From: Macrostomum lignano | Taxonomy: Eukaryota | Reading direction: 5' to 3' | Assembly: GCA_002269645.1 (NCBI GenBank) | Contig: NIVC01000649.1 | Coordinates: forward strand, 23,703-87,702 | Length of the DNA stretch: 64,000 bases | In this document: positions 15,961-58,609 of the stretch, in pieces | How positions within the stretch are numbered: position 1 is the first letter of the stretch | Layout of the letters: the number at the start of each line of letters is the position of its first letter | The notes under the pieces: generated by a model | The model's database searches: none | Told to the model about the DNA's origin: nothing | Seen by the model: the letters and a program-made list of their open reading frames with translations, nothing else | Made by a program: the position numbers and the translations under genes

Positions 15961-16027
15961 CACTTCAGTCTCCGCTCTCTCCATCTCTTATTCTCCCCCT
16001 TCTACAGGCACTCAGCCAGTCAGCCAG

Positions 16028-28500: not shown

Positions 28501-31500
28501 CAAGTGCCTCATGTCTAACACAACTGCCTCATGTCTAACACAAGTGCCTCATGTCTAACAGAGTGCCTCATGTCTAACAGAGTGCCTCATGTCTAACACA
28601 AGTGCCTCATGTCTAACACAACTGCCTCATGTCTAACACAAGTGCCTCATGTCTAACAGAGTGCCTCATGTCTAACAGAGTGCCTCATGTCTAACAGAGT
28701 GCCTCATGTCTAACAGAGTGCCTCATGTCTAACAGAGTGCCTCATGTCTAACAGAGTGCCTCATGTCTAATAGAGTGCCTCATGTCTAATACAAGTGCCT
28801 CATGTCTAACACAAGTGCCTCATTTCTAACACAAGTGCCTCATGTCTAATAGAGTGCCTCATGTCTAACACAAGTGCCTCATGTCTAACACAACTGCCTC
28901 ATGTCTAACACAACTGCCTCATGTCTAACACAACTGCCTCATGTCTAACACAACTGCCTCATGTCTAACACAACTGCCTCATGTCTAACACAAGTGCCTT
29001 ATGTCTAACAGAGTTTCTGTTAATGTCTATTATGTCTAACAGAGTGATTCATGTCTAACAGAGTGCCTCATGTCTAACACAAGTGCCTCATGTTTAACAC
29101 AAGTGCCTCATGTCTAACACAAGTGCCTCATGTCTAACACAAGTGCCTCATGTCTAACACATGTGCCTTATGTCTAACACAAGTGCCTCATGTCTAACAC
29201 AAGTGTCTCATGTCTAACACAAGTGCCTCATGTCTAACACAAGTGTCTCATGTCTAACACAAGTGCCTCATGTCTAACACAAGTACCTCATGTCTAACAC
29301 AAGTGCTTTATGTCTAAAACAAGTGCTTACGAGTATGCTTAACACAAGTGCCTCATGTCTAACACAAGTGCCTCATGTCTAACACAAGTGCCTCATGTCT
29401 AACACAAGTGCCTCATGTCTAACACAAGTGCCTCATGTCTAACTTTTAAGCTATTCTTCTTTGGACTGGCCCGAGGTCCATGGACAGAAGATTTCTACCA
29501 GTGCGTCTCGTTGGAAATGCAGCCCACTGGTACAGATCACCTGACAGCTCACATGAACAAGCTGGTGCTGGCCTACATGCTGTTTAACATTGCCAGTCTG
29601 TTTCTTGGCCCACTGTGCTGCTTGAGCACAGCTTACGGACTTATTATTAGCAGGATCTCAGCGAAATCTCGCGAACTGGGCGGTGAGTAAACAGCTATGG
29701 AAATATTGATCGATTGTTAATGCATTAATTAATGGCATTTGTACTTCTACTCCTGCTCATTCAGAGATACAGAGACTGAGAACGAGTTCGAATATAAGGC
29801 AGAGGAGCAGATATGAGAGAGGCAGAGATGAGAGAGGCGGAGATGAGAGAGGCAGAGTTGAGAGAGGCAGAGATTAGAGAGACAGAGATGAGAGAGGCAG
29901 TGATGAGAGAGGCAGTGATGAGAGAGGCAGTGATGAGAGAGGCAGTGATGAGAGGGGCAGTGATGAGAGGGGCAGAGATGACAGAGGCAGAGATGAGAGG
30001 GGCAGAGATGAGAGAGGCAGAGATGAGAGGGGCAGAGATGACAGAGGCAGAGATGAGAGGGGCAGAGATGAGAGAGGCAGAGATGAGAGAGGCAGAGACG
30101 GGAGAGGCAGGGATGAGAGAGGCAGAGACGAGAGGGGCAGAGATGAGAGAGGCAGAGATGAGAGGGGCAGAGATGAGAGGGGCAGAGATGAGAGAGGCAG
30201 AGATGAGAGGGGCAGAGATGAGGGTTGCAGAGACGGGAGAAGCGGAGATGAGAGGGACAGAGATGGGAGAGGCAGAGACGAGAGGGGCAGGGATGAGAGG
30301 CAGAGACGAGAGAGGCAGAGACGAGAGGGGCAGTGATGAGAGGGGCAGAGATGAGAGAGGCAGTGATGAGAGAGGCAGTGATGAGAGGGGCAGAGATGAG
30401 AGGGGCAGAGATGAGAGGGGCAGTGATGAGAGGGGCAGAGATGAGAGAGGCAGAGATGAGAGAGGCAGTGATGAGAGGGGCAGAGATGAGAGGGGCAGAG
30501 ATGAGAGGGGCAGAGATGAGAGGGGCAGAGATGAGAGAGGCAGAGATGAGAGAGGCAGAGATGAGAGATGCAGAGATAAGAGAGGCAGGGATGAGAGAGG
30601 CAGGGATGAGAGAGGCAGTGATGAGAGGGGCAGAGATGAGAGAGGCAGAGATGAGAGATGCAGAGATGAGAGAGGCAGGGATGAGAGAGGCAGTGATGAG
30701 AGGGGCAGAGATGAGAGAGGCAGAGATGAGAGATGCAGAGATGAGAGAGGCAGAGATGAGAGGGGCAGTGATGAGAGAGGCAGAGATGAGAGAGGCAGAG
30801 ATGAGAGAGGCAGGGATGAGAGAGGCAGTGATGAGAGGGGCAGAGATGAGAGGGGCAGAGATGAGAGGGGCAGAGATGAGAGGGGCAGAGATGAGAGAGG
30901 CAGAGATGAGAGAGGCAGTGATGAGAGATGCAGAGATGAGAGAGGCAGGGATGAGAGAGGCAGAGATGAGAGAGGCAGGGATGAGAGAGGCAGTGATGAG
31001 AGGGGCAGAGATGAGAGAGGCAGAGATGAGAGATGCAGAGATGAGAGAGGCAGAGATGAGAGAGGCAGGGATGAGAGAGGCAGTGATGAGAGGGGCAGAG
31101 ATGAGAGAGGCAGAGATGAGAGATGCAGAGATGAGAGAGGCAGGGATGAGAGAGGCAGTGATGAGAGGGGCAGAGATGAGAGAGGCAGAGATGAGAGATG
31201 CAGAGATGAGAGAGGCAGGGATGAGAGAGGCAGTGATGAGAGGGGCAGAGATGAGAGAGGCAGAGATGAGAGATGCAGAGATGAGAGAGGCAGAGATGAG
31301 AGGGGCAGTGATGAGAGAGGCAGAGATGAGAGAGGCAGAGATGAGAGAGGCAGGGATGAGAGAGGCAGTGATGAGAGGGGCAGAGATGAGAGGGGCAGAG
31401 ATGAGAGGGGCAGAGATGAGAGGGGCAGAGATGAGAGAGGCGGAGATGAGAGAGGCAGTGATGAGAGATGCAGAGATGAGAGAGGCAGGGATGAGAGAGG

Positions 31501-34500
31501 CAGAGATGAGAGAGGCAGGGATGAGAGAGGCAGTGATGAGAGGGGCAGAGATGAGAGAGGCAGAGATGAGAGATGCAGAGATGAGAGAGGCAGAGATGAG
31601 AGAGGCAGGGATGAGAGAGGCAGTGATGAGAGGGGCAGAGATGAGAGAGGCAGAGATGAGAGATGCAGAGATGAGAGAGGCAGAGATGAGAGAGGCAGGG
31701 ATGAGAGAGGCAGGGATGAGAGAGGCAGAGATGAGAGGGGCAGAGATGAGAGATGCAGAGATGAGAGGGGCAGAGATGAGAGAGGCAGAGATGAGAGAGG
31801 CAGAGACGGGAGAGGCAGGGATGAGAGAGGCAGAGATGAGAGGGGCAGAGATGAGAGGGGCAGAGATGAGAGAGGCAGAGATGAGAGGGGCAGAGATGAG
31901 GGTTGCAGAGACGGGAGAAGCGGAGATGAGAGGGACAGAGATGGGAGAGGCAGAGACGAGAGGGGCAGGGATGAGAGGCAGAGACGAGAGAGGCAGAGAC
32001 GAGAGGGGCAGTGATGAGAGGGGCAGAGATGAGAGAGGCAGTGATGAGAGAGGCAGTGATGAGAGGGGCAGAGATGAGAGGGGCAGAGATGAGAGGGGCA
32101 GAGATGAGAGGGGCAGAGATGAGAGAGGCAGAGATGAGAGAGGCAGTGATGAGAGGGGCAGAGATGAGAGGGGCAGAGATGAGAGAGGCAGAGATGAGAG
32201 GGGCAGAGACGAGAGAGGCAGAGATAAGAGAGGCAGAGATAAGAAAGGCAGAGATAAGAGAGGCAGTGATGAGAGAGGCAGATATGAGAGAGGCAGAGAT
32301 GAGAGAGGCAGAGATGAGAGAGGCAGAGATGAGAGAGGCAGAGATGAGAGAGGCAGAGATGAGAGAGGCAGAGATAAGAGAGGCAGAGATAAGAGAGGCA
32401 GAGACGAGAGAGGCAGAGATGAGAGGGGCAGAGACGAGAGAGGCAGATGTGATATTTATGCAAGTCACGAGGATGGTTGCGAAAATGTCTAGGTCAGACG
32501 GAATCGTGGATATAGAATTCACCCCTAACAAGAGAATCTAGTAATCTTTAAATTTGCAGTTTCAACCGCTCTTCACCAAAATTAATCTTATAAGCTCACT
32601 TCCGCTCGCATTGAAACTATGGACTTGGTTGCCTGTGTGCAATTCGATTCTGGCCAATCCTTTCATTAAGTGGATGGATTCTGCTATGGGAATTGAATTA
32701 TTGTGACTCTGGAATTGCCTATTACATATAGGTTATAACCTCTATATGACTTTAGATTGTACAACATCAAGGCTTTCTGTGCACTTTTATTGAAAGCTAG
32801 TTTATATTGACTCTTAACTATAATTACTAGCCTATCGCTGAGTAACACACTCCAGTATAACACCCTCCTGTGTAACATCCACCGGTGTAACACCCTCCTG
32901 TGTAACATCCACCGGTGTAACACCCTCCTGTGTAACATCCACCGGTGTAACACCCTCCTGTGTAACATCCACCGGTGTAACACCCTCCTGTGTAACACCC
33001 TCCTGTGTAACAACCTCCTGTGTAACACCCTCCTGTGTAACACCCTCCTGTGTAACACCGTCCTGTGTAACACCCCCTCCTGTGTCTAACAGGATTGTGT
33101 TGTCTTCCAATATTCCAACAGGCAGTCCAGATGCAAATTGCACCCAGGTTACCAAATGCAAATCTCCTTTTTTGCTACAATAGCATGCTGCATTCAGCAA
33201 ATTCGTGATAGAATTTACGGAAACAATGGATTGTTTGAATTTCAATTATTCAAAGGTTATTTCCAAGCTGTTTTTTCCTCATTTCATAGGCAATACCGGG
33301 TATTCGTTTGGTGTTTATTGTTAAAGCATTTTTTACTCCAAATTAAAAATTTAATCTTCATAGTGCAACTCAGTCAGCATTAGGGAGAGTTTAGCCAGTC
33401 CTTTTAGACTGACCGATCTCCAACACTAGAATCTCACCCTGAGAGTCTTTGTGAGACTAATTCTAATTGCTATCCCATACCACAGAATCTCACCCTGAGA
33501 GTCTTTGTGAGATCGACTCTAATTGCTATCTGAGACCCTAGAATCTCACCCAGAGAGTCTTTTCTCAGACCATAGAATCTCACCTTGAGAGTCTTTGTGA
33601 GACCGACTCTAATTGCTATCCTATACCATAGAATCTCACCTTGAGAGTCTTTGTGAGACTAACTCTAATTGCTATCCCATACCACAGAGTCTCACCCTGA
33701 GAGTCTTTGTGAGATCGACTCTAATTGCTATCTGAGACCCTATAATCTCACCCAGAGAGTCTTTTCTCAGACCATAGAATCTCACCTTGAGAGTCTTTGT
33801 GAGACCGACTCTAATTGCTATCCCATACCATAGAATCTCACCTTGAGAGTCTTTGTGAGAATAACTTCAATTGCTATCTGAGATCCTATCTAATTGCTAT
33901 CTTTTCTTCTACGTCACTTCAGCCACGGATGCTGAAAGTCTTAACAGCGATCAACAGCAGCAACAGCAGCAGCAGCCGCTGCAGCCCCAACCCCAATCCA
34001 GCCCGCCGACACTCTGCACCGACTTCTCAAATAGCCATCATCATTCAAGACAGCAGCAGCAGCGGTCTCAACTTCAGTCCCAGTCGCCACCGAGCTACGA
34101 GATGCAATTAAACCAAGCCGGCAACTTCATCGCCAGTTATCGTCAGGCATTTTTATTTCGCGTCAAATTGCGCAGCTTTCGAATGTTCTCCGTCATCATT
34201 TTGACATTCCTACTGCTTTGGCTGCCCTACTGGGGACTGTACATATTTGCGTGCGCTAACCGGCTTAGCGGAGGTCGGTACAACGACGCGGTGGAACTGA
34301 TTTCAAACGGCGTGTTCTTTTTCGGCATGTCTACCAGCGCTGTGAATCCGGTAATCTACGGGGCCTATCAGAGCCGCTGGCCGACACCTTTGTCAGCCTG
34401 TTTTGACCGCTGCTGCTGCTGCTGCAAGAGTCTTGAGCAACACGAAGAGATCAACGATCTGGTAGCAGTTGGTTATCGCCAGCAGCCGGTTAATTTGGTG

Positions 34501-37348: not shown

Positions 37349-40300
37349 CTAAGCATGGGCCTCAATTTCCCTGGCCACACTGTCCCTTCGAAGTGAATCG
37401 CGTCGATGTCGCAGACTCAGCGCCAAGCCGATGCTGATGTAGTAAAAGAACTCAAGCAGCTCGCAGATTGTCAGAACAGATATTCCGCTCCATAGGCCTA
37501 GAGCTCCTGAAAAAAGAAAGTTTATACAATAGGTGTACATGCATTTATTAAACTGCGCAAACCTTCACAAAGTGGAGGGGGGCACTGCCCTTCACAAATC
37601 CAATGAGGGACCCATATCTAGTGGAAGTTGAGGTTGTCAAAGACCCCCAGGAAAGAATGAAAGTCCCTTGTCGAGGATCCCCATTCACTGCAGTGGCAGC
37701 CACAGCCATAAACTCCACTGGACCATAGAAAATAAAGCAAGCCAATCAATATTGATAAAAGGGATTTCTCATAGCCAGAGTTGATGGGTTCGGGCTTCTT
37801 AAGCTTTTTTGATCGGAAACTTTTCCGTCCTCAGAGTCCAGAAATGAATCACTGAGCACTCTAGCTAGCCTTGCATTCCTGTCAGATGGTAGGTCAATAA
37901 TATGGCTAAAAGAGAGGAGAGCGAGAGACTAGTAGGGAGAATTTGAAAGGGGTAGAAAACAACAAATCCTAGGATTTATGCTAATCCGCCATCACAAGCT
38001 GAATAGGCTTTACGAAGCAGCACTTTCGAAATCAGTTTTTTGACTAGAATTGCAGCTTCTGCACGTACCTGCCAACTAGTGTCTTAGTATACCTATAGCT
38101 GTCCATCTCCGATGTATAAAGCTGGACGCTGCGAGGACTAGATCGTATTGATCATGCAGCAGGGACAGAGTGGACTTTTTGTGGGGGTTCTTGCGCTGTC
38201 TGAATACATGATCAAAAAACTAAATTCTCAGAAAGTATTCGGGATTTCCAATACCTGTTTGATCGATAGACTGATGGGCTGGAAAACCTCGATCAGTAAA
38301 GTGGCCACTCATCTTGTCCAGCATTGCGATAAGAGTTGCACTTGAAAACTTAAATGATCGAAATTTGACTTTCTCTTTAATTTAAAGTTATTTGCTTTGA
38401 ACTGAATCGGAGCAATAGGAATTGAAGTTCTTCCACAAAAATAGCACATTTAAACGAGAGGTGAGAAGGGCCGATTTGTTATACTCAGTGTGGAATTTTC
38501 TTATTGGACGAGCTCAGGATGACTAGCTCGACTTTCAAGACCTCGCAAAATCCTTTGCGCCTGCATGGCGACCTCTCATACATGTACCCCAGGGAGGGGG
38601 GTCGCCATCATTAACACGAAAAATCACAATTTTGAAAAGCGCTTTCTATCATAAACCCGAAACAGCATCACTTCGAAAACCAAAATAGTGTTGGACGTTG
38701 CTAGAACTTTCGAAGTTGTGATATTTCGGGTTTATGATAACTCGGGTTTATTATATTTCAGGTTAAGTAGTTAAAGTATTAAGTATGAGTAGTTGAAGAC
38801 AAACAGAAGACAAACTATCTATCGAAATGCTATACTTTCTGGAGCGAGAAATGATAGCTATATACGATAATAAATCGAAAAATGTGAAAAATTGTGACGC
38901 CCTAAAACAGGTGAGCATGAATCAAAGTTCAACATTTAGGAGTCATACTCGTGTTTATTTACTACGTTTAGTAGCACACAGTTTATTTTTTCAGTAGTAT
39001 TGATCGAAATAGGCAGTTATAAATGTAGCAATTGAGTAAGATTCAAGTAAGATAATGAATTATTTTTCTTATAAATTGCCATAAAAATAGTAAGAATAAA
39101 CAATAGAAGTATAGTTTTGATAAATTGCCATTAATTCAAACAGTCACTTTTACTAGGACACAATCGTTCTCTCATTCGTAGTTTAATTAACTTTGAATAT
39201 TCGCAGTTAGACTAGGAATTTAACTAGGAATAAGCTTCGAATTTCCTAAGAGGGTATGCTCAATTCAGAAAGGCCTTCAACTCAACGCAAATGTAAAACA
39301 GAAAGAAACACTAAAATGGCGTCGCAGTCACTTGGTGAAGCCCGATAGATCTCAAATTCGGAATCCAGCCAAGATGAACGGCTGGTATAAAAAAGTCAGA
39401 CACGTTTCTGCCCCGACAAACAAATCTGAGCTCGCCAGCTTTTGGGACTGGTCAACTGCTTTAGGAGACTGATTTCGAACTTGGCTCAAAAGACTGCTCC
39501 TCTTAATTAACTGCAAAAATCTAACACCAACTTTGACTGGACCGATGAGTGCTCTCGAGCTTTCGATAATCTCAAAGCTGAAGTCCCAATAGTGCAATAT
39601 ATAGTGCAAGCCCTATAGCCTATCAAAAGAGTTAACTCTAAGAAAGGATGCCTCAAAGAGCTCAATCGCCGCGTAGTGACATAGGAGAGGTATCCCAAAA
39701 TATTTGTTTCGAGGACACTGTCAGCCGCCAAATCAAATTTCTCAAAAATCAAACTTCCTTCATGGCCGTTAGGCACGATTTTCAGCCACTGACTCGTCTC
39801 TTCTGGCTGTGACATCTCTACAGCTTTGCACACATCGTCGAGAATTGGGCGCTGGGCTATGCGTCTCATGCACTTTGACTCTTGAACATCGAGTATGTGC
39901 AAGAAGCTGCGATATTCCACACGCTGACGCTCCACATCGGCTCCGCTTCGACAACTATTTCGCAGACGACAAGGAAACGTTTGATACCATCAACGCCGAG
40001 GCATTCGAATCACTGGTGATCGAGGCCAAAAGAATTTTGACAAAAATGGACACAGAGACCCGTTCACCCAGAAGATACTCATGAGAATACGCCATGGAGA
40101 CTGTCAGGGTTGCTCGCAAGCGGAGTCAAGTTTCAAAGCCATTTTCGAAAAGCTAGCGCTGGACAACAGACTTTTTACATGCAGAGGAGGCTTTTCATCC
40201 CTCCAGCTTCGCCGGCCTGCCTCTCAATAAAGAAAGGCCACTTCGACTCAACACGAAGTCTTAACGCAGAAAAGCAATCATCAATAAAGAAAATCCTAAA

Positions 40301-43300
40301 TTAACAATCGAGCCTACTATTAGTAAGAGAGAAGGAGATGAGAACTAGTGTGCAATTAAAAAATTAAAAAAGTTCTTCCTCATCCAGTGACTGAGCGAAT
40401 GGGGTGGGTTAGGTGCAATTCTCGTGGCAGTGGCTGTTGCCGCGGTGTGTAAGGTTTTTAGACTTGATTGGCTTTAGTAATTCAAAAACATACAGTCAAA
40501 AAACGCAGTTACCTCCTATATCGGCCAGAAGATTTTTCGCGGGGTAGGCCTCCTCTTCCGAAATTTCCTGACCATACTGTGACGTTGCCAGTTTAAGGTG
40601 GTCCCGAAAAGGGCCGTTGGACTGCTGTTTCTCTATAGTTTCAACCCTTCAGTTTCACCGTTTCAACTAAACTTTTCCATTTGTTTATTGCGACGTTTAC
40701 TTGTAGTAGTGCCCAACGATTTTGTGGCAATTTCTAATTCACTGTATATTTTGCTATCCTCTCTCGCGACCGTATAAAACTGGCACGATCGATAATTTTA
40801 AGTTCTCTCGCCAGCCAATGAAAATCACTCGTGCTTCGCGCTACCCCCCTCTGCGCTCCTTTATTAAACCCCCGCCTGGCGGCGGGCACTCCTCACTCCC
40901 GTCCTTATCTGTGCTTCTCTCTTCCTCCCGGCCTGTCCTTAGCCTTGTGTGTGTTTTCCTTCTCTCTGTCTGGCTGCCTCGAGCCTCCTTACCTCACGCC
41001 ACGGCTGACGCCAACTTCGCCACTGCTCATCTGCCTGCCTACTACGTCTCACTGCCTTCACTGTACTCATTGCCATTGATCATCACGTTACGTCGCCATT
41101 ACATCACTCGTCTGTCGCTTGAACTGACTATCCAATTTATCTTCAAAGAAACCATTGTTGCAGCCGCCAGTGCCCAGAAAGCCATAGTTTGTTATTTGCC
41201 AGTAACAACCAAACTTACTATTTATATTGATAATAAAAACGACTACGGCAGTTTCCTGCCCTTATTGCCAAGTGCTCCGCTACACCATCCACTTCGCCTA
41301 AGTTGACTTCAACTTATTTTGGGACTAAAACGGCCCTTTTAAGGGTCACAGCCAACATCAAATAACGTGACCATACGACGTCAATCCTTTAACCGTCAGT
41401 TGAGCCAGTCGGTCTCGAAGAAATTTTAGCTCGTTTTCAAAATTAATTCTATCGTGCAAGTTGCTCTCGGTCAGATTGCTTTCCAACATGACCAGAGAGC
41501 GCCAGTAAGTGCTGTAGATGCTGCTTATTCCTCTAAGACGACTGTACTCTGTTCCTAAGCCAAAATTGTGCGCCAGCTTCTTTAGAATCTCCATCGACTT
41601 GGCGCCACTTAGATCCGGCCAAGCGTAGGAGATAAGCCGCATGTCGTAGTCGGTTTCCTCGCACGGCGACAAGGCTTTCTTAGCTGCCTCGAACTGGTAC
41701 TGCAGCATCTTCGATAACTGCTCTCTGTAGCATGATTCCCGTAGCCTTGACACAGTCTCCGTGTCATTGGTGTCAAAGCAGAAGGTATAGTTCGAGAAAA
41801 ACTCAACTTCAATTGGCAGAAATTATGGCAAGCAGTTACATGCCTTAGCGAAATGTTGCACAGTAAATTTGTTTGTGTAGTCTTCTTTGCTTGGGATATT
41901 GTAGCGCCAATCCATTGCTTGCAGGGGTCTACAAAGTCAAATGTAAAAGATTTCATATCGTAGGATTAAACTGTTGGACAGGTTAAAATGTTGAGTACAG
42001 TATGCCACGCACCTCAACGCGTTTTGTTTTTCAAGTTGTGCTCGCAGAACAGCAATTTTTTGCCACCATTCCGAGGCTGCCTTAACGAAGTGTAAACGTA
42101 TATTTTCCCTGAAATAGAAAGTCACGATAATGCAATTTAGGATCATACTTATGTCCAAGTAATATTTCCAGGCTTACTCATTAGAACTCGTGGTTTTAGC
42201 CTGCTTCCAAGACGGCATTCTGTAAGTTACAGGCTCCGTGTTCTCAACACAGGGCCTCGATGCAGTGGATAGCTTCTTAATTTTTTTAAACTCAACTGAA
42301 TATCCATACTTTGAGCTGTGGCAACATCGACACCCTTTGACGGCCATGGGTAGCTGCCTTCTGGGACTATGACTGCCTGCAAAATTCAGGAGATGTTTGT
42401 GAAAAACTAATAAAGTGGTAATTAATTAAAAGCTTCTACCAACAATGAGAAATAAGATTGAACACGCGGGGTTGAGAACTAGGAACTAAGACATGATAAT
42501 CAGGACATGAAAACTTGAGAGAAGAACACAACGCAACGGCATGGTACAAACAGTTTCAAAACATTCCCTGTTTGTAGGACTTACTTTAAAAGCGATTTTT
42601 CTTTCATCATTGCTCACGGACCTGTGCACGATGCGGTTCAGCTTGTCCAATTCTGGTATTGTTCCACCATTCGAGTCTGTCGAGTCCGTGAAATATTTGA
42701 TTGACAGCTGACTGTCCGCCAACTGCGAGCTGGACATGTTCTGGGTGAATCGCTGCTTCATAAAGTGGTGACACATGCCCAGCTGCGGGTGAGACACGCT
42801 CAGGAAGTCGTCTTTAGTGCAGCTCTGGCCACCGAAGGAGCACTCGGCCAGGGTGAAGCTCAGGTCGCTGCTGAACTGCAGGGCCAGCAGATGGCTGCCG
42901 ATGCCATCCCGGATCGCAGCAGTCACGGTGGGAACTTTAGTGTCTGCAAGACATCAATAAGAGCTAGAAAACTGTAGCACTTATTGGCTGTGACATTTCT
43001 TCTACTTATCTTAAAGCTAAATACATGTAGTATATTGTATTGTGGCCTAAGCAGAAGGGGAGGGGCGAGGGGGGGGGACGTTCCTATTAAAAAAACAAAC
43101 TAAAGAACTGATGGGTTCCTTTTATAAGACCGAAATTTCACAACACTGAAAACTCCATATGCAAGACCCTTTACAAGCCCGAAAATTCATATGACGGAAA
43201 GTTCACATCGTAGAAAAATTAATACAACAAGGACCATGCAAATATTTGGCGTTGTCAAATTCGGTCTTGTACGAGCTAGAGGGTCTCGTATATACTCGTA

Positions 43301-46300
43301 GAGTTTTCGGCGTTGTGAAATCACAGGCCTAAGATGAGAGGGACAGGCCCAAGGACAGGGGCGGGCGCCAATCGAGAGACAGACATTCAGACAGAAGTGA
43401 GACAGATGCAGGCAGAAACTGGCACAATATTTTTTAGGACTATTTGACTGGGAAATGCTAAACTCACAGCAGGCGGTAATGTCGCACTTGGTCAATGCCA
43501 AATTTACCAAATTGGATTTTCCGAAGGTGTCAGAAACGCAGGAGGGAGCCTCGTCGTCTGATTTCAAATCTGGGTTCCGACTAAAATGTTCGATATGAGA
43601 ACTTAGGGCTGCAAGTGTTTTGGCACTTAAATAATTACTGAATTGGCCGCACTATTAAGCATATAGCTGCAATTAATGCTTACTAATAAACCCTGTCTGA
43701 AAAGCCAAACTCCCGGATAATTTGAGCAGGCCTGCAAAAATTGTCAGCACCTTCAAGCCGGTCATAGTCGGGCGTTTCCAAATGAATCCGCATTTTATAG
43801 TCATAGTTGGCTGAAATGTGACAGTTTAAAATATAAAGACATTTTGTTTAAATATTAAAAGCGCTGGAGGACAACGGGATTATATAAATAAATAAAATAC
43901 TTTTACTCAACAACTACACAGTTTTTTTTATTTCGTTATTGTGTTATTGTGTTTTGTTGTTACTGCTACTAGAGAAGAGTTTCTCATTCAGTCACAAATT
44001 GTTTTTGTCTGATGTTTCTAAACTTGTACGAGTAGTAGCGAAACTTGCTTCCCCGTATAATCGTACGAATATCTACATAAAGTATGCGTGTAACTTATAA
44101 AGTATAGCTACTTATAATCTAAAATTCTAATAAATGATTTTTTCTCGTCAATTAGTTTTTTTATTGTCCAAGACAACTATTAGACCATACTGCTAACTTA
44201 GCCCAGGTTTTTGTTGTTAAAGCGCTTTAAATATTATCATAAATTTTCCCGAAAAACTTTCTTTCCTCGAAAAATCTCGTTAATTTTTTTTAATTGAATA
44301 TAATACTTACGAATAAATACTTCACCGTTCTACTAGTAACCACCACCGTATTGGTTTTACACGTAAAACTCGTTTTATTATTTTACGTCTACATAGTACA
44401 TGCACTTTACCAACTGGATCTATTTTTTGCTTTCTCTGCTTGTTTCGTTCCACGATCTGGTTCCAGGCCAAGCAGGGCTCTCCCGAGGCCGCCACATTCC
44501 TGTAGCCGGTGTAGACGGCCTGCTGTCGCTGCCGAGCTGCTTCGTCAGCTGTACCAGAAATGCAGTCATAGCCGGAATTCATGCCTATAAAATGATGTTG
44601 TAGTACTCCTAAAGTTACTGAAATTTTATTAAGTTTATTAAGGAATCGCTGTCTGCATCAGAGGTTAGACGCTACTCATACATGCTACACTGTCAAAACC
44701 GGAGATTGCGACGTTTGCCAGCCGATGTTAATAGTCGACGTCGTCATACAAGTCATTAAGTAGATTAAGTGCGTTGCTCGTACATTACTAGACTATACAC
44801 GCTTATGCATTCGCATGTATAAACATGTAGGTAGTCTGGAGCTTAGACTCAAGGGCCACTAGAAGTTACCGTTGTAGCAGTTGTGTTACAGCCTGAATAC
44901 AAGTACAACAGTAACTTCTAATGGTCCATGCTTAGACTTCTTCCCACGGTAATTTATTTGGAACTCGTGAATCCTGGCCGAACGCCAACCGTCGAATCGC
45001 GTGGCCTTTTATTAAGCTCCGAAAATTCCCTGTCTGCTCAAATTGTTTCAATAGCGAATGTATGGTCAGCATCTTTACGGGCGTTAAAGAAATCAAAATG
45101 AACTCTATCAATGACCACTTTCGACGAAAATTAGACGAAAAACTTAGACGAAACGGATCGCCTCCTGAAGAGTAATCTTGAAAGAAATTTAGCGCGGACC
45201 TCTTACCTAATGCCTGTGTTAAATAGTTCTATTTCTAACATCTGTACACTTATTCACGGTTAAAGCCTCTTGACTCAATGCTTTTGACCAGTTTGCAAAT
45301 TTGAACCGAGAACAGTTTGAAACTGGCCCCATCAGCAAATCAAAAGTTCAGAAGGCGTGTGCGGTGTCCTTCTACAACAGCAGCGTTCAAAATTGAAGCC
45401 TTAGAAACCTACGGCAGAGTGGGACGTTGCAGAAAGCAGCCTCAAGCCTGCCAAAATCGTCTTTGAAAAAGCAGTAGGGCCCGTTTGATAATGCCGTCAG
45501 GACGCTTGAGTTGCTGATTCGTAGCGGCTTTGAGTCTGAAAATGAAGCACGACTTGATTAAAAAGCTAGCTCGCATTGTTTGCGCGCATTTAAAATTGCA
45601 GCAGTTCTGTTCCCTCACTTACCGGTATCTCTTATACAAAAAACATTGACATCGCAATCGCATTTCCTTGCGACGCTGTTAATCGATAATTTGTCGCAGA
45701 ACCCCTGCTGTGTATTGTTCCAAGTGCCGCAGTGACACTCGCCGTCCCGCAGGGCAATGTGCGTGAAGTCGAGCTCATCGCAGCAGTCGGCGCACAGTTC
45801 TGTAGTTATTCGGCCACGTACGAGACATGTCTTGTTGAAGTTCTCTTCAACAGTGCTGGAGTTTTTTGCAAAACAACCTACTCGTTGTAGCAGCGATCCT
45901 GATATTGTGTTCAAAAGTTAATAGAAGAAATCAAAGTTTAGATTTATTAACAAATCATCAAGGCTAAATGCATTTCTAATGGTAAATTATCAGCTGATTT
46001 AGTATTAACTACAGGTAAGAAAAATATTTGGCAACAGTTCTCTGCAAGAGGATGAGTAAACGATGACTGCTGGCATGCACCTATAAAAGGCTCGAAGCCA
46101 TGTGGCTATTAGTAAATCCCGTATCTCCTTCCTCTACATCCACAGTCGCCTGAATGCACAAACGATAATAGAGGGAAAGACGGAAAGTGCTAAAGTGCAT
46201 CTGCGTTTCGGTGGTTGCCACACCAGACCATAATAGGCTTAGCTCGAACAGCTATAAACAATTATAAATTTTCCTAGTATATAGCAACACAGCTCGAGCA

Positions 46301-47859
46301 ATTTTAACTGCGGTTGAGCTTGGAATACTTATTTTTATCGTAACTACGAATCGACTAGACTCGACGTATTTATTGCCCGACAAGGTTTCTTCTGGAGTCA
46401 GCGAGAGCAATTACAGTAGAAGATAAATTGTTAAAGTATCCGCAAAATTCACAGAGTCAACATAATTTTTTATCACTCACTGCTGCCAATCGGAAAAAAC
46501 TCAGACAGCGGCAGTCGGACCGGAGCTCGGCACCGGGACTCGCTGTCAGAGTAATTAAGCATCAGCAGCCGGTCGCCCAGGCTTGCTGCGCCTCGAGCTT
46601 TCAGCATCCGAGCAGCTTCGCTCCATCGAATGCACGGCTTGGTCGTCGTGTACGGCTTTAGCGACCGGTCAGTGCGTTGTAGATCGATTCGCGCTCGATC
46701 GTATGTCACCGCGAAACTTCTATTGCCAGCGTACTCCTCTCCAGACAAGCTGGTTCGACAGTCTAAGAGTGCATCTTCTGCAATGCAATCAACGTTGAAT
46801 CCTTTCAGCGATCATATTTTAACTGTCATAACCAACTCTCCACGAATCTGTGCGCAATAAAAATTATTTGTATCTTCTTCACGAAAGTTAGGTGGCGGGT
46901 GGTGCGATTCGTCTGATATCAAATCTGATCCATATCAAATCCATGAGATTGTACTTGTCCGACAATTGGACAGTCAAGGCTGCTTGCTGTTCATCCAGTC
47001 TGCGTACAGTATTAGCGCTTGCATGTTCTCAACAGTCAGCGGAATGTGCAGAGATGCCTCAGCTTTGGTTGCGGAATGTGGAAAATTCGCCAAAGGCGTT
47101 GCGCCAGATGGTGCCTGCAACTCTCCTGAGAATATTTTAGGCCGAACATCAATATACATGTACGGTAACAAAGCATAGCACCACTAGCAAAATTTAGCAA
47201 CCATATGTAATCTGATGCTATTATTCTAAAAGTTAATACAAAGAAAACACTTATGACTTAAGTATCAAAATATGAAAAAGAGCACTATATGACTCACCAT
47301 CTTGGGGAAGTTGAAACTTTGCTATGAAAGCGGCCTCCGTGGCCTTGAGAACGTAAAGTATTGCCCTAGCCGGCTTGCTCAACGCATATAAATCGTCATT
47401 TGTTCCATTAAATCGAAAGAAATTAGCTTTGAATTCAGGTTTCACATGGTCTCTAGCGTTGAAACTAATGTAAACGGATTCAATTTCTTTGCTGGCCCTG
47501 CTCATAGTGACTGGCTGGGCGGGGCAGATGTACACATCCGGGAACTGGAATCCCAGACTGGACATGGTCATGGTGGTGAGAACAGGCGCCTGAGCGAACC
47601 TGTCAAAGAGAGTGTACAGGTGATAGGCAAATCCTGAGTAGGTTCCCAGAAGGAACCCGATCCAAATCAGCTTGCCGATTGCACTGGACTGGCTGGCGAA
47701 TCTTCCCAAGCCGTGCGCTGTCGTGTATCCGAGAAACTCGATAGCAGACCTGCGCAGTTGGTTCGCTTTTGGCGTCCTATCATGCTGCTGCTGCTGCTGC
47801 AGCTGTTCCATACTCGGCTCTTGAATTCCGTGCTTGGTAGCAAGAATAGCAGTGGACAT
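37349..47859 (-). CDS. DEG/ENaC (ASIC/FaNaC-like) channel subunit with kringle and WSC modules in the finger region; apparent lesions present
   Basis: Exons 47859-47298, [46777-46481, 45898-45623, 45535-45413, 44584-44411, 43608-43468], 42943-42585, 42376-42178, 42108-42013, 41928-41377, 40577-40513, 37506-37349. Motifs TTAHG, TM1, FPDVYIC, ECSFGGQSC..DF..HPQLGMC, AFKAVIVPEGSYP, CNCLP, PCEETDY....YAWP, AYPAKNLLADIGG|ALGLWSGISVLTICE. Reconstructed CDS is 3003 nt (~1000 aa) after adding one A at 42281-42287, reading through TAA at 41825-41823 and removing the 40578-41367 insertion plus one repeat copy. Confidence 0.88.
39340..40300 (+). mobile_element. Degenerate Ty3/gypsy pol remnant (RT connection, RNase H, start of integrase)
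   Basis: Broken frames give PTNKSELASF..GLVNCFRRLISNLAQKTAPL..FDWTDECSRAFDNLK, RIGRWAMRLMHFD, HADAPHRL, RRLFIPP..KGH; multiple stops and frameshifts; lies in the last ENaC intron. Confidence 0.8.
40578..41367. mobile_element. 790-bp insertion flanked by a 9-bp direct repeat TGACCATAC; LTR-like internal features
   Basis: Repeat copies at 40569-40577 and 41368-41376. TGTGAC (40578)...GTCACA (41350) inverted hexamer, CCAAT 40815, AATAAA 41232. Removal restores an ungapped ENaC sequence. Confidence 0.75.
43468..43608 (-). CDS. ENaC module exon: C-terminal half of kringle 2
   Basis: 141 nt, cag|...|gtgagt, phase 1-1: EHFSRNPD..APSC..KCDITAC (cf. NYCRNPD..PWC..YCDIP.C). The expected third Cys is Ser (AGT). 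Confidence 0.8.
44411..44584 (-). CDS. ENaC module exon: N-terminal half of kringle 2
   Basis: 174 nt, tag|...|gtaaag, phase 1-1: YDC..VYTGYRNVAASGEPCLAWN. Confidence 0.8.
44850..44929. mobile_element. 80-bp micro-MITE with 24-bp imperfect TIRs and a 9-bp flanking direct repeat GCTTAGACT
   Basis: Arms 44853-44876 and 44904-44927 (21/24 complementary); direct repeats at 44841-44849 and 44930-44938. Confidence 0.65.
45413..45535 (-). CDS. ENaC module exon: C-terminal half of kringle 1 (below the ORF-track length cutoff)
   Basis: 123 nt, ttttcag|...|gtaggt, phase 1-1: SKPLRISNSSVLTALSNGPYCFFKDDFGRLEAAFCNVPLC (cf. GPWCY...YC.VP.C). Confidence 0.82.
45623..45898 (-). CDS. ENaC module exon: WSC domain
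   Basis: 276 nt, cag|...|gtaagt, phase 1-1: VGCF..ITTELCADCC..FTHIALRDGECHCG..FC..KCDC. Confidence 0.8.
46481..46777 (-). CDS. ENaC module exon: N-terminal part of kringle 1
   Basis: 297 nt, ttgcag|...|gtgagt, phase 1-1: LDCRTSLSGEEYAGNRS..KPCIRW..RCRAP. Confidence 0.78.
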
Positions 47860-50640: not shown

Positions 50641-52359
50641 CAAATTAGGACAGGTGCAATTCAAAGCAAGTTTTGAACGTCCTGTTCAAGGTTTGGAGAA
50701 TTGCTATATTTTCAGCAGTTAGTCCAATCAGATATAGTGATAGATAGCTTATCACGCTTGTTATCAGACGCTTTATTTAAACCAGTCCACCGATATTGTC
50801 CTCTTTGTTGCTGACAGATCCTTGTTAACCTTTAAATTTAACTCTGACGTGGATTTACACGACGGGGTTCGCACAGTTTTTTTAGCGCATAGGGTCTTTC
50901 GATCTGAGGGCTGAATCAAGCAACCCATTGTTGAGCGAATTCATGATAGGCTAGGTGGTGACAGTGGGTTGACGCAGCTGACTTATGGGGAGGGGGTTGT
51001 GCGTAAGTGGCTAACAGTAATAGGGAGAGTGGTAGCCAATCAGAATTGGACAAGCCTAGGGCCGGGGCTGCAAACATCCTGTTAGACTGGGTTGATGGGG
51101 GTTTAAGCAACTTGATCATCAGTGCAGGTGTACACACGGTAAAGGCCGGCTGCACATTACCCCTAATAGCACCGCAGATCAGAGATTGCTCAAATCAATG
51201 TACAGTTTGTTTAGAACCGTTTTAGAAGGTGTACTGTTTGCTTTCACTAGTTTAGGAATTTAATATAGGACCAATTTGAATTTTTAATGCAGTGAACTCT
51301 TGCTTCTCTAATAATAATTGAAAGTTCCAGTGGTCTATCAGCAATCTGAACATCTAAGGGTATTAGAGACACGTTTAGCAGCACCACGTTCCCAAGCAAC
51401 CCATGAATTCGATTCCGAGTCATCAGCGTGAGTGCCCAGAAGACGCCACTTGCAAATTTACGAGCTAGACAGGACGTTGCTTTGATTCGAGTAAGTCTTT
51501 CTTCAAATCAGTTGCTGCGCATCGAGTGCCTTTGGGCCTCGCCGAGGGCAATTTCAGGTGACGGGTAATTTAGCTAACTTAATGATCATTTTTTTTTAAT
51601 TATCAACGGATCTGAGACTGATTCGTTTTTCTCGAATTTTGATATAATTGCTCTCATCTGATTGAGGAGTCTTCACTGATTCTGTGTAATTAATCTTTGT
51701 AGAAAGCTCAGCACTTGACAAATATGACTAGTTTCTATTTATTAGTTTAGGAGCAGATTGTAAAACGATTCTACTGATAGTAGTCAGGGTACGCTAATTT
51801 TTATTCTGCCTGTAGTTGAGGCTGAATTCGATTGACCAGGGACTTCTAGTAATAGCAGTAGTGGACTGGAAACTAGACTGAAGCACTTGCCACTTCCCTC
51901 TATCAAAGTTCGTCTCCTTCCAGCTCCCTTCTCTCTATCCGGTTCTATCAAATTCGTTTCCTTCCAGCTCCCTTCTCTCTATCCGGTTCTATCAAATTCG
52001 TTTCCTTTCAGCTCCCTTCTCTCTCATCTCTCCTCTCTCTTCTCATCAGCTCTCCTCTCTCCTCTCCCCTCTCATCAGCTCTCTATGAGAGGTGATAAGA
52101 TATAAAGATATATTATCTCTTTCTCATATTTTCTCCTATCTGTCATCTTTATAAATTTTTTAACTGTCAGTGGAGCCTCAGCCAGTGAGAAACTATTTGA
52201 AGCTATCAATAAACTTCTTCACATCTAGCAGGAAACTCAGAGTTTAAATTTGACAAACAAACAATTGGTTTATAATTAAAAAACAGGTTATGTTCAGAAA
52301 TGATAAGAAAAGTGGAATGCAATTGGTGCTAAAATCTCAGCGCTATATTTCTGGCGTCC

Positions 52360-54300
52360 TTGGTGCCGGCGCCCATTGGTGCTGGCGCCCCTTGGTGCTG
52401 GCGCCCCTTGGTGCTGGCGCCCCTTGGTGCTGGCGCCCCTTGGTGCTGGCGCCCCTTGGTGCTGGCGCCCCTTGGTGCTGGCGCCCCTTGGTGCTGGCGC
52501 CCCTTGGTGCTGGCGCCCCTTGGTGCTGGCGCCCCTTGGTGCTGGCGCCCCTTGGTGCTGGCGCCCCTTGGTGCTGGCGCCCCTTGGTGCTGGCGCCCCT
52601 TGGTGCTGGCGCCCCTTGGTGCTGGCGCCCCTTGGTGCTGGCGCCCCTTGGTGCTGGCGCCCCTTGGTGCTGGCGCCCCTTGGTGCTGGCGCCCCTTGGT
52701 GCTGGCGCCCCTTGGTGCTGGCGCCCCTTGGTGCTGGCGCCCCTTGGTGCTGGCGCCCCTTGGTGCTGGCGCCCCTTGGTGCTGGCGCCCCTTGGTGCTG
52801 GCGCCCCTTGGTGCTGGCGCCCCTTGGTGCTGGCGCCCCTTGGTGCTGGCGCCCCTTGGTGCTGGCGCCCCTTGGTGCTGGCGCCCCTTGGTGCTGGCGC
52901 CCCTTGGTGCTGGCGCCCCTTGGTGCTGGCGCCCCTTGGTGCTGGCGCCCCTTGGTGCTGGCGCCCCTTGGTGCTGGCGCCCCTTGGTGCTGGCGCCCCT
53001 TGGTGCTGGCGCCCCTTGGTGCTAAAGCCCCTTGGTGCTAAAGCCCCTTGGTGCTAAAGCCCCTTGGTGCTAAAGCCCCTTGGTGCTGGCGCCCCTTGGT
53101 GCTAAAGCCCCTTGGTGCTAAAGCCCCTTGGTGCTAAAGCCCCTTGGTGCTAAAGCCCCTTGGTGCTAAAGCCCCTTGGTGCTAAAGCCCCTTGGTGCTA
53201 AAGCCCCTTGGTGCTAAAGCCCCTTGGTGCTAAAGCCCCTTGGTGCTGGCGCCCCTTGGTGCTGGCGCCCCTTGGTGCTAAAGCCCCTTGGTGCTAAAGC
53301 CCCTTGGTGCTAAAGCCCCTTGGTGCTAAAGCCCCTTGGTGCTAAAGCCCCTTGGTGCTAAAGCCCCTTGGTGCTAAAGCCCCTTGGTGCTAAAGCCCCT
53401 TGGTGCTAAAGCCCCTTGGTGCTGGCGCCCCTTGGTGCTGGCGCCCCTTGGTGCTGGCGCCCCTTGGTGCTAAAGCCCCTTGGTGCTAAAGCCCCTTGGT
53501 GCTAAAGCCCCTTGGTGCTAAAGCCCCTTGGTGCTAAAGCCCCTTGGTGCTAAAGCCCCTTGGTGCTGGCGCCCCTTGGTGCTAAAGCCCCTTGGTGCTA
53601 AAGCCCCTTGGTGCTAAAGCCCCTTGGTGCTAAAGCCCCTTGGTGCTAAAGCCCCTTGGTGCTAAAGCCCCTTGGTGCTGGCGCCCCTTGGTGCTAAAGC
53701 CCCTTGGTGCTAAAGCCCCTTGGTGCTGGCGCCCCTTGGTGCTGGCGCCCCTTGGTGCTGGCGCCCCTTGGTGCTGGCGCCCCTTGGTGCTAAAGCCCCT
53801 TGGTGCTAAAGCCCCTTGGTGCTAAAGCCCCTTGGTGCTAAAGCCCCTTGGTGCTAAAGCCCCTTGGTGCTAAAGCCCCTTGGTGCTAAAGCCCCTTGGT
53901 GCTAAAGCCCCTTGGTGCTAAAGCCCCTTGGTGCTAAAGCCCCTTGGTGCTAAAGCCCTTGGTGCTAAAGCCCCTTGGTGCTAAAGCCCCTTGGTGCTAA
54001 AGCCCCTTGGTGCTAAAGCCCCTTGGTGCTAAAGCCCCTTGGTGCTAAAGCCCCTTGGTGCTAAAGCCCCTTGGTGCTAAAGCCCTTTGGTGCTAAAGCC
54101 ATTTGGTGCTAAAGCCCCTTGGTGCTAAAGCCCTTTGGTGCTAAAGCCCCTTGGTGCTAAAGCCCCTTGGTGCTAAAGCCCCTTGGTGCTAAAGCCCCTT
54201 GGTGCTAAAGCCCCTTGGTGCTAAAGCCCCTTGGTGCTAAAGCCCTTTGGTGCTAAAGCCCCTTGGTGCTAAAGCCCCTTGGTGCTAAAGCCCCTTGGTG
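52360..54300. repeat. 16-bp minisatellite GCCCCTTGGTGCT(GGC/AAA), ~120 copies
   Basis: Homogeneous GGC block to ~53020, then mostly AAA units with interspersed GGC units. Confidence 0.97.
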
Positions 54301-55279
54301 GGGTTTTGAAAGGGTTAATTGAGGTGACATTCCATAAGCTAAGTGTAGCCTTGTGAATCCACTGTTTTTAATCTGGATGACTCCAAGTTCTGCGTCAAAC
54401 TGTCCTTGGACAGGATGGAGAGCGGAGGAGGCGGACAGATGCAGAGAGAGAACCGTGGGAACCGCGACACGTGGGATCGCTCTAGCATCCCCAGCATCCC
54501 CAGCAGCTCCATCAGGGATTTTTGTTGATTCATTCTTTCTCCCCATCTATACAGCTTCCTCCATCCCATGCATGCGTTCCAATGCTAACATACTCGACTG
54601 GGTTTCCAGTCCAGATCGGGTTTTCTCTTCAATCGCTCAATCGTATTGAAATCGACTGTGAAGACGAATTGCAGATAAGCTTAGCTGCTTAGAAGGGATA
54701 TTTGTTAAATAATTGAACTAGTATAGTTCGCTGGGATTATCTTAGAATGCTTGGTTGGATAGACAAGAAGCTTTCCCTGAGCTCCTTCTGTCTCCTACGC
54801 CTACCCCCTGTCCATTCTTCCAGCGCCCCCAAGCGAACATGGCCTTGGAACAACAGCTGACGGAATTCCCACCATAACTGGTGGCCCCTTACAAGACACG
54901 GCCCAAGAGTTTCTTTTCCTTCATCTGGCTCCTCGTCGATTCGTTACCAGGGCCTAAACTCTTATATGCTACGGAGACTGGAAAACGAAACTATTTTTGT
55001 CAATACTTGAAGCAAAAACTATACATGTACATGTTCAAATGACGCCAAAATCAGTGTTTTAGCTAGGGAAAAATCAGTGCTTAGAAAGGTCCAAAATTAG
55101 GGTTTATTTCTCGCAAAAATTAATGTTTATATAACGACAGAATCAGTGTTTAAATAGTGTTTAAATTGGTGTTTAAATACCAACAAAATCGGTGTACAAA
55201 TTGTGCAACAATCTGTGTTTAAATATCGCAAAAACCAGTGTTTAAATATCTTCAAAATCGGTGTTTAAAAGGCGACTAA

Positions 55280-55580
55280 ATTTGTGTCTAAACAGCGCCA
55301 AAATTAGTGTCTAAACAGCGCCAAAATTAGTGTTTAAACAGCGCCAAAATTAGTGTCTAAACAGCGCCAAAATTAGTATCTAAATAGCGCCAAAATTAGT
55401 GTCTAAATAGCGCCAAAATTAGTGTTTAAACAGCGCCAAAATTAGTGTCTAAATAGCGCCAAAATTAGTGTCTAAATAGCGCCAAAATTAGTGTCTAAAT
55501 AGCGCCAAAATTAGTGTCTAAATAGCGCCAAAATTAGTGTGTAAACAGCGCCAAAATTAGTGTCTAAACAACGCCAAAAT
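55280..55580. repeat. 23-bp minisatellite AGCGCCAAAATTAGTGTCTAAA(C/T), 12-13 copies
   Basis: Counted 12 copies with an intact GCGCCAAA plus one variant. Confidence 0.92.
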
Positions 55581-56302
55581 TTGTGTTTAAATCGCGCCAT
55601 AGCGCCGAAATCGGTGCTGACAGAAATTTTCAGAGTGAAAATTTTAAACTCAAACCTCCAAATATCGTGACCGGGCGCAGAAAAAATAAAAGAAGAGTTG
55701 CCTTTCCAGAATTTTGCTTAACGAAGTTTAATGCTCCGCGTCTTCACGCGTGCTCCCGTTGTCGTGTTTTGGGATTCGAAATTGCTGCTTACTGGGTGAG
55801 GGGCCGGGGCTGCGGAAGTCGCTTGATTGGTAAGAAAACGGTTACCGCAGCCTCCACCCCTACCCCAAGCCTGGCTCAAGAGCAAGACTTAAATAGATGC
55901 TATCCAATTTCTGTAGGGAAACTTATCAAATAGGGCCGCCTCTCTGCCCGTTAATTTCTGCTCCTAGCCAAACCATTTGTTAGTGAAAGACACGTGGATA
56001 TTGCATATAGAATATGATATACTGGTTTGGCTAGGAAGAAGCCAAACTAGAAGTGCCACGTAAAATCACTCCAAGAGAGCTACTAAGCCTTACCATAATA
56101 AGCCTTACTAGGCCACCCGTGAGAACGGAGCCATCTGGATTTCTTATTTTTCCTCGCTTTGCTCCCTCCTCCCTCTCTGGCTGCTCACGCTACTCCCTAT
56201 ACCGTTTTTAGGCATAGAGGGAAGAGAAGAGCTCAGCCCTAGCAGTAGGTAAGGGCTGCAATCCGAATCATATTCCCACTGTGCAGTTGCGCGTGCGCGT
56301 GA

Positions 56303-58609
<2,307 letters not shown>

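Follow-up and report, generated by a model that had tools for sequence, protein, structure and literature searches.

Does an insertion that lies inside a coding exon and carries GT- and AG-like borders mark the birth of an intron, or has it simply broken the gene that received it? The question is raised by a 64,000-nucleotide stretch of the genome of the flatworm Macrostomum lignano (NCBI GenBank assembly GCA_002269645.1, contig NIVC01000649.1, positions 23,703 to 87,702 of the forward strand), referred to here as the window and numbered from its first letter. Within the window, exon 11 of Mlig013355g1, a DEG/ENaC channel gene (Pfam ASC, PF00858) on the minus strand, is split by a 790-bp non-coding segment that stands between two exact copies of a 9-bp repeat. 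A first-pass annotation, made from the letters of the DNA, had placed this insert one base from a perfect new intron and called the event introner-like, keeping a gene-disrupting insertion as the fallback. The reading as intron birth is not supported by the analysis described here; the observation itself holds but is unremarkable, the insert being an ordinary gene-breaking insertion. Comparison with related copies indicates that the window copy of the gene is very probably a decaying redundant paralog, a pseudogene candidate, in which the insert would be a further disabling lesion and not an intron.

M. lignano is a recent hidden polyploid. In its assembly most regions exist as three paralogous copies, with an identity of ~98 % at small scale and with indels as the main kind of difference (PMC10733133). 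The Mlig_3_7 assembly, built from PacBio reads with Canu and polished with Pilon, contains 180 Mb of duplicated blocks at an identity of at least 95 % (PMC5730564). Three near-identical paralogous copies of the channel gene are present in it, namely the window copy and two sister copies at the loci L002 (NIVC01000261.1) and L003 (NIVC01004162.1), as would be expected in a recently duplicated genome; the window copy is 95-100 % identical to the sister copies, depending on the segment. The annotated product of the window copy, matched by a search with exon 1, is P0002 (PAA79168.1, BOX15_Mlig013355g1; 726 aa), whose contig matches the window at 100 % identity, and its 90 % cluster also contains P0152 (Mlig006398g1, 1033 aa, full length) and P0153 (Mlig031843g1, 550 aa), both from other contigs. 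The exon map was obtained by splice-mapping P0152 on L002 and transferring exons and splice sites to the window, where the gene spans positions 37349 to 47859 with 12 exons and 11 introns. For the comparison of introns a distant paralog, P0160, was splice-mapped on L005.

On the minus strand the interrupted exon reads ...GGATTGACGTC GTATGGTCA [790 bp] GTATGGTCA GGAAATTTCGG.... The upstream part of exon 11 (41368-41928, 561 nt) ends with the first copy of the repeat (41368-41376); the insert occupies 40578-41367 and the second copy 40569-40577, after which the downstream part of the exon (40513-40568, 56 nt) runs to the natural donor of intron 11, GTAACT. The 9-mer is included in a 17-nt repeat family, D7, with a spacing of 799, and joining the flanks with one copy of the repeat restores ...RLAQLTVKGLTSYGQEISEEEAYPAKNLLADIGG. 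The insert is in neither sister copy. L002 and L003 show the empty site, ...GACGTCGTATGGTCAGGAAATT..., and both read CTCAACTGACGGTTAAAGGATTGACGTCGTATGGTCAGGAAATTTCGG at this position, with the 9-mer GTATGGTCA occurring singly. On alignment with L002, the window falls into two blocks, 45293-41368 and 40577-38611, which overlap by exactly 9 bp, and the same is seen for L003.

The continuity of the site extends beyond the sister copies. The window exon aligns to P0001, P0003 and P0152 without gaps at this position, and distant paralogs read through it with an (S/G)QE motif (P0001 ..TSSSQEITEEEAYP.., P0003 ..TSFGQEILEEEAYP.., P0006 ..SDFGQEMTEEPSY..). In P0160 on L005 the homologous exon is uninterrupted over 597 nt, and the next intron follows directly after ..ADMGG, matching the window gene. 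Because sister copies and distant paralogs are all continuous at the site, the ancestral state was evidently an uninterrupted exon without an old intron, and the insert is a gain private to the window copy; loss of an ancestral intron from the sister copies was rejected on the same continuity of the distant paralogs. The sequence and coordinates of the insert and its two exact repeats are as the first-pass annotation gave them. Its reconstruction of the empty site, aligned without gaps to an ASIC stretch, proved correct as well, although what demonstrates it is the single-copy site in L002 and L003 and not the ASIC sequence; paralogs, where it had proposed that the empty site be sought, are indeed where it was found.

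The insertion point falls in the codon of Gln963, just before the last transmembrane helix. When the insert is retained, the open reading frame (ORF) ends ...LTSYGHVI, that is, His-Val-Ile are added after ...TSYG and a TGA stop follows before the second transmembrane segment (TM2). In the intact sister protein P0152 the ASC profile scores 139 bits (cut-off 23.6), the stretch 800-1001 covers profile positions 306-455, and the match reaches position 455, with TM2 included. The truncated P0002 covers profile positions 1-181 only.

The insert is one of three disabling changes that are private to the window copy when compared with both sister copies. In the same exon, ~450 nt upstream of the insert, an in-frame TAA (41825-41823, minus strand) stands where both sister copies have TCA, the codon for Ser811 of P0152, and a serine is conserved at this position in P0001, P0003 and P0006. 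In exon 9 a run of seven A residues (42287-42281, minus strand) corresponds to A8 in L002 and to TTTT followed by A7 in L003, and causes a -1 frameshift due to which the annotated protein ends ...RTRSL at 42227, with 726 aa as against 1033 aa for P0152. L002 and L003 are intact at both the TAA and the A-run sites. It is on account of these three independent lesions, set against two intact sister copies, that the window copy is considered a probable pseudogene, and the fallback of the first-pass annotation, a gene-disrupting insertion, therefore holds, together with a nonsense codon and a frameshift in the same copy.

In the window copy only, a 790-bp non-coding segment was inserted into exon 11 at Gln963, and a staggered break at the insertion, once filled in, produced the 9-bp target-site duplication. 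If the insert is retained, the frame stops three codons in, before TM2; with the nonsense codon in the same exon and the one-base deletion in exon 9, the insert would be one more lesion in a copy that is probably decaying. As for the insert itself, it is most likely either a mobile element of the non-autonomous kind or a stretch of non-coding DNA that was copied.

Some observations weigh against this interpretation of decay. In the window copy neither the start codon nor any of the 11 natural splice sites is damaged. The substitutions on the window lineage in exons 5-12, 6 synonymous as against 5 non-synonymous and 1 stop, are not obviously neutral, and because of these counts any loss of function or constraint in the window copy would be recent. 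The difference between A7 and A8 could be due to a homopolymer error, the assembly being based on PacBio reads, and an exact in-frame GT..AG interval of 799 nt is present, through which, as far as the sequence alone shows, the insert may be spliced out. As regards the mobile-element label, the evidence consists of the duplication of 9 bp and of the inverted hairpins close to the two ends, no second copy having been seen in ~200 kb. The C>A substitution that created the TAA and the 790-bp insert with its perfect duplication are not typical assembler errors. As a separate observation, the exons 5-12 of L002 (13322-19714 of that locus), which encode the intact sister P0152, carry 10 private non-synonymous changes and 1 synonymous change, and thus the supposedly intact copy does not look strongly constrained, the numbers being small.

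What the insert consists of was examined at the level of proteins, structured RNAs and further copies. A six-frame Pfam scan of the insert gave two weak matches, far below the cut-off, to unrelated bacterial families. A 194-aa ORF on its pyrimidine-rich strand had no homolog in a set of 5.8 billion proteins. No tRNA, 5S or ribozyme match to the insert was obtained in Rfam. The suggestion of the first-pass annotation that the element be compared by BLASTN with possible further copies led to none: the window and 137 kb of five other M. lignano loci (L002-L006) returned noise only, in a search that covered ~200 kb of M. lignano DNA or ~0.03 % of the genome.

The one notable feature of the insert is a pair of structured elements near its ends. 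A hairpin similar to the histone 3' stem-loop (Rfam RF00032) is found near one end on the plus strand (hairpin 1, 41327-41372, 25.8 bits) and another near the opposite end on the minus strand (hairpin 2, 40574-40620, 21.3 bits); both face outward and both lie below the RF00032 gathering score of 34. The stem of hairpin 1 consists of 6 bp, among them a G-U pair (pair 2), and stops 20 nt short of the end of the insert; its loop is UUUA, and its fold reaches -9.4 kcal/mol (z = -2.2). Hairpin 2 is degenerate, with a C-A mismatch in the stem, which ends ~22 nt from the insert end, and its fold is no better than that of shuffled sequence. The two share, in inverted orientation, the 12-mer AACGGCCCTTTT, which has no other occurrence in 201 kb, and in ~181 kb scanned (the 64-kb window and 117 kb of M. 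lignano DNA) RF00032-like matches are limited to the two insert ends. The subterminal inverted repeat is ~21 nt long with 81 % identity. An end-to-end alignment of the insert termini was not better than shuffled, scoring 29 as compared to 22.7 +/- 3.9 for the shuffles (maximum 44). Neither hairpin is preceded by a histone ORF and none is present between them, no histone similarity is seen in any frame, and a tblastn search of the insert with the four core histones revealed no remnants.

These features enable some known classes to be set aside. A Helitron was rejected, as Helitrons leave the target unduplicated and require a CTRR end. A retroposed histone mRNA was rejected since the insert does not stop at the cleavage site but extends 20-22 nt beyond the stem, and since it lacks an ORF; and a short or long interspersed nuclear element (SINE/LINE) was rejected for lack of an A-tail or simple-repeat tail and of a tRNA, 5S or ribozyme match. 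Two further observations concern the interior of the insert. On the minus strand, at 41186-41229, an ATG and an ORF of 28 codons come ~35 nt after a TATAAATA motif; the start of this ORF is hydrophobic and resembles a signal peptide (MAFWALAAATMVSL...). On the plus strand near 40810-40823 a CCAAT-like and octamer-like motif (GCCAATGAAAAT) is seen. Promoter-like DNA of another locus may form part of the insert.

Between the two origins considered most likely for the insert, the 9-bp duplication and the symmetric subterminal repeats favour a non-autonomous mobile element. A serious rival, to which we assign a smaller though substantial share of probability, is that the insert is filler DNA: a staggered double-strand break would have been repaired by copying ~790 bp from elsewhere in the genome, possibly from a divergent transcription unit, now degenerate, whose 3' ends are of the histone type, and the 9-bp repeat would have arisen when the overhangs were filled in. 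This rival stays serious because the insert seems to be single-copy and to lack true terminal repeats, no other copy having been seen in the ~200 kb and its extreme ends showing no significant terminal inverted repeat. Likewise, neither the ORF search nor the six-frame scan revealed a transposase in the insert, and the two hairpins resemble decayed versions of a single canonical histone stem-loop. In Daphnia, short direct repeats flanking single-copy inserts are reportedly the signature of break-repair insertions and new introns, with which the repeat flanking this insert would agree. Nevertheless, the symmetric layout, with AACGGCCCTTTT inverted 20 and 22 nt from the ends, would better fit an element whose ends are defined, and the absence of other copies is weak evidence considering the small fraction of the genome that was searched.

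Far less probable than filler DNA is a more elaborate form of the mobile-element origin, in which the insert would be one copy of an undescribed Macrostomum mobile family that carries outward-facing histone-type 3' processing hairpins and may be removable through the 799-nt GT..AG interval, as a raw, unoptimised introner-type insertion. A search of the literature for transposons with histone stem-loops found nothing relevant, and to our knowledge a transposon terminus of this kind has not been described so far. The pair of histone-stem-loop-like hairpins is the sole remaining curiosity of the locus; if it were the true mark of a mobile family, it would represent a new type of element end.

Still more doubtful is the proposal that the insert is a newly gained, introner-like spliceosomal intron, spliced either at the 799-nt GT..AG interval or, with a missing G supplied, from GTATGG to CACAG, and leaving a functional channel. 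Introners are reportedly transposon insertions whose target-site duplications create introns, and the geometry of the present insert is of that kind. Enumeration of splice pairs gave a sole exact in-frame interval of 799 nt, the length of insert plus duplication, at 40568-41366 on the minus strand (cac|GTTATT...GGTCAG|gaa), with a donor side reading cac|GTTATTTG at 41366 and the acceptor GGTCAG|gaa at 40568. Splicing at this pair would need no base change and would turn GQE into GHE, the replacement of Gln963 by His being the single residue change. This option had been missed by the first-pass annotation, for which splicing as assembled removed 800 nt instead of 799. Its arithmetic for the other pair is right, as GTATGG (41376) to CACAG (40577) does remove 800 nt and shift the frame, and one natural donor of a paralog, GTATGC, is near to GTATGG.

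The splice signals, on the other hand, argue against this proposal. With a weight matrix built from the 11 introns of the gene itself, where real sites scored leave-one-out have a median near 6, the GTATGG donor scores 2.6 (rank 26 among 82 GTs in the region) and the CACAG acceptor -1.2, while for the 799-nt pair the donor scores -1.5 and the acceptor -3.9. Stronger cryptic donors lie within the insert, GTAAGT at 41218 and GTAAGG at 40992. A purine is present at +3 in 24 of 24 donors mapped in the window gene and P0160, leaving the GTT donor without a counterpart, and a T-rich run precedes YAG in all 11 acceptors of the gene, whereas the acceptors of both pairs have no T-rich tract. As judged by these comparisons, neither pair appears to resemble a real splice site of the host gene. 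Gln963 is conserved in every homolog seen, and a protein with the GHE junction was found in none of the 5 cluster members.

The extra G at either boundary that the first-pass annotation had postulated finds no support. The assembled junctions are exactly the sister empty site plus the 9-bp duplication, in which no additional G is expected, so a missing G would be ad hoc; the single-base deficit elsewhere in the gene is A8>A7 and not of the GG-to-G type that it had cited. Moreover, as the TAA and the exon 9 frameshift would remain after its removal, the protein would not be restored by excision of the insert. The ~200 kb searched contain no second copy, and we found no relevant report of introners in Macrostomum or Platyhelminthes in the literature. 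Taken together, the genuine insertion, the 9-bp duplication, the empty site and the fallback of the first-pass annotation stand, and its new-intron and introner reading gives way to junctions that need no extra G, two further lesions, poor splice scores and the lack of a second copy in the DNA searched.

That the insert does not exist in the worm and is an artefact of assembly, due for instance to a PacBio read that was chimeric or to faulty polishing of the region, is the least probable explanation of all, for although only ~64 % of Mlig_3_7 bases are rated error-free by REAPR (PMC5730564) and three-fold paralogy confuses read mapping (PMC10733133), assemblers do not produce an exact 9-bp target duplication at precise insert borders (chance about 4e-6) and both flanks are collinear with both sister copies.

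For completeness, the remaining structure of the host gene and its surroundings is given here. On the minus strand exons 1-6 of Mlig013355g1 lie at 47859-47298, 46777-46481, 45898-45623, 45535-45413, 44584-44411 and 43810-43684, and exons 7-12 at 43580-43468, 42943-42585, 42376-42178, 42108-42013, 41928-40513 (with the insert inside) and 37506-37352. The gene belongs to a DEG/ENaC subfamily with a very long extracellular loop (exons 2-7 of the window gene, 46777-43468; paralog loci L004-L006) and proteins of ~1030-1090 aa. Precomputed Pfam hits for the paralogs place a WSC domain between two ASC halves, and cluster mates are named as Kringle-domain or WSC-domain proteins; the Pfam scan of P0152 in this analysis reported ASC alone. 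Comparison of the window (50000-36600) with L002 (7860-20899) gives a mosaic of identities, being 99.98 % and ungapped over the first 4.7 kb, which includes exons 1-4, and further downstream 97.9 %, 96.1 %, 89-92 % and 83 %. Such a mosaic suggests gene conversion between paralogs, or a mosaic of assembly or polishing. Intron 11, of 3 kb, is the region where the three copies differ most by indels, and it contains a 160-codon open stretch (39510-39989, minus strand) without a Pfam match, possibly a repeat remnant. Outside the gene, long minisatellite arrays crowd the regions 1630-33889 and 51899-57996 of the window. Their periods are 10-48 nt, their copy numbers reach 176, and some of the arrays are extremely strand-skewed (for example CT-rich at 13576-15987 and GA-rich at 29807-32447). 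This abundance is consistent with the reported high tandem-repeat content of the M. lignano genome.

As one of many indel differences among three paralogous blocks, and in a copy that is probably already losing function, the insert by itself matters little. The case does call for caution: GT/AG-like borders do not turn an exon insertion into evidence that an intron has been born before the rest of the gene and the sister copies have been checked.

Known systems provide a useful frame for the event. With the introners of Micromonas, Aureococcus, fungi and other aquatic eukaryotes it shares an insertion with target-site duplication inside a coding exon and a GT..AG pair, partly built from the duplication, that spans exactly the insert and one repeat. 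Unlike them, it has no family of copies in the ~200 kb, its splice sites are weak and its host copy is otherwise broken, so that the gene is not intact after removal of the element, the TAA (41825-41823) and the frameshift (42287-42281) being left behind. Non-autonomous DNA transposons with 8-9-bp duplications, such as Mutator-like, Merlin and hAT-type miniature inverted-repeat transposable elements, are similar in their 9-bp duplication, sub-kilobase and non-coding nature and inverted repeats near both ends; in the present insert, however, the inverted repeat of ~21 nt (81 %) is subterminal, 20-22 nt inside, and the extreme termini are without a significant match. Both ends are similar to the histone mRNA 3' stem-loop in their GGCCCU stem of 6 bp, in their loop (UUUA or UUUC) and in their flanks, which are A-rich on the 5' side and read ACA or ACC on the 3' side, but both scores fall short of the Rfam threshold, neither stem is perfect, with a G-U pair in one and a C-A mismatch in the other, and there is no upstream histone ORF.

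The break-repair introns and insertions of Daphnia pulex offer a further parallel, in that an apparently single-copy insert with short exact direct repeats occurs in one of several near-identical copies; the window insert differs in showing no sign of functioning as an intron and in residing in a pseudogene candidate. Only in the case of the loss of redundant copies in the duplicated M. lignano genome is no difference apparent, as here too three paralogs differ mainly by indels and one of them gathers lesions. The event therefore resembles introners and the new introns of Daphnia in geometry only, and fits the ordinary process, described for this species, by which paralogs decay after genome duplication.

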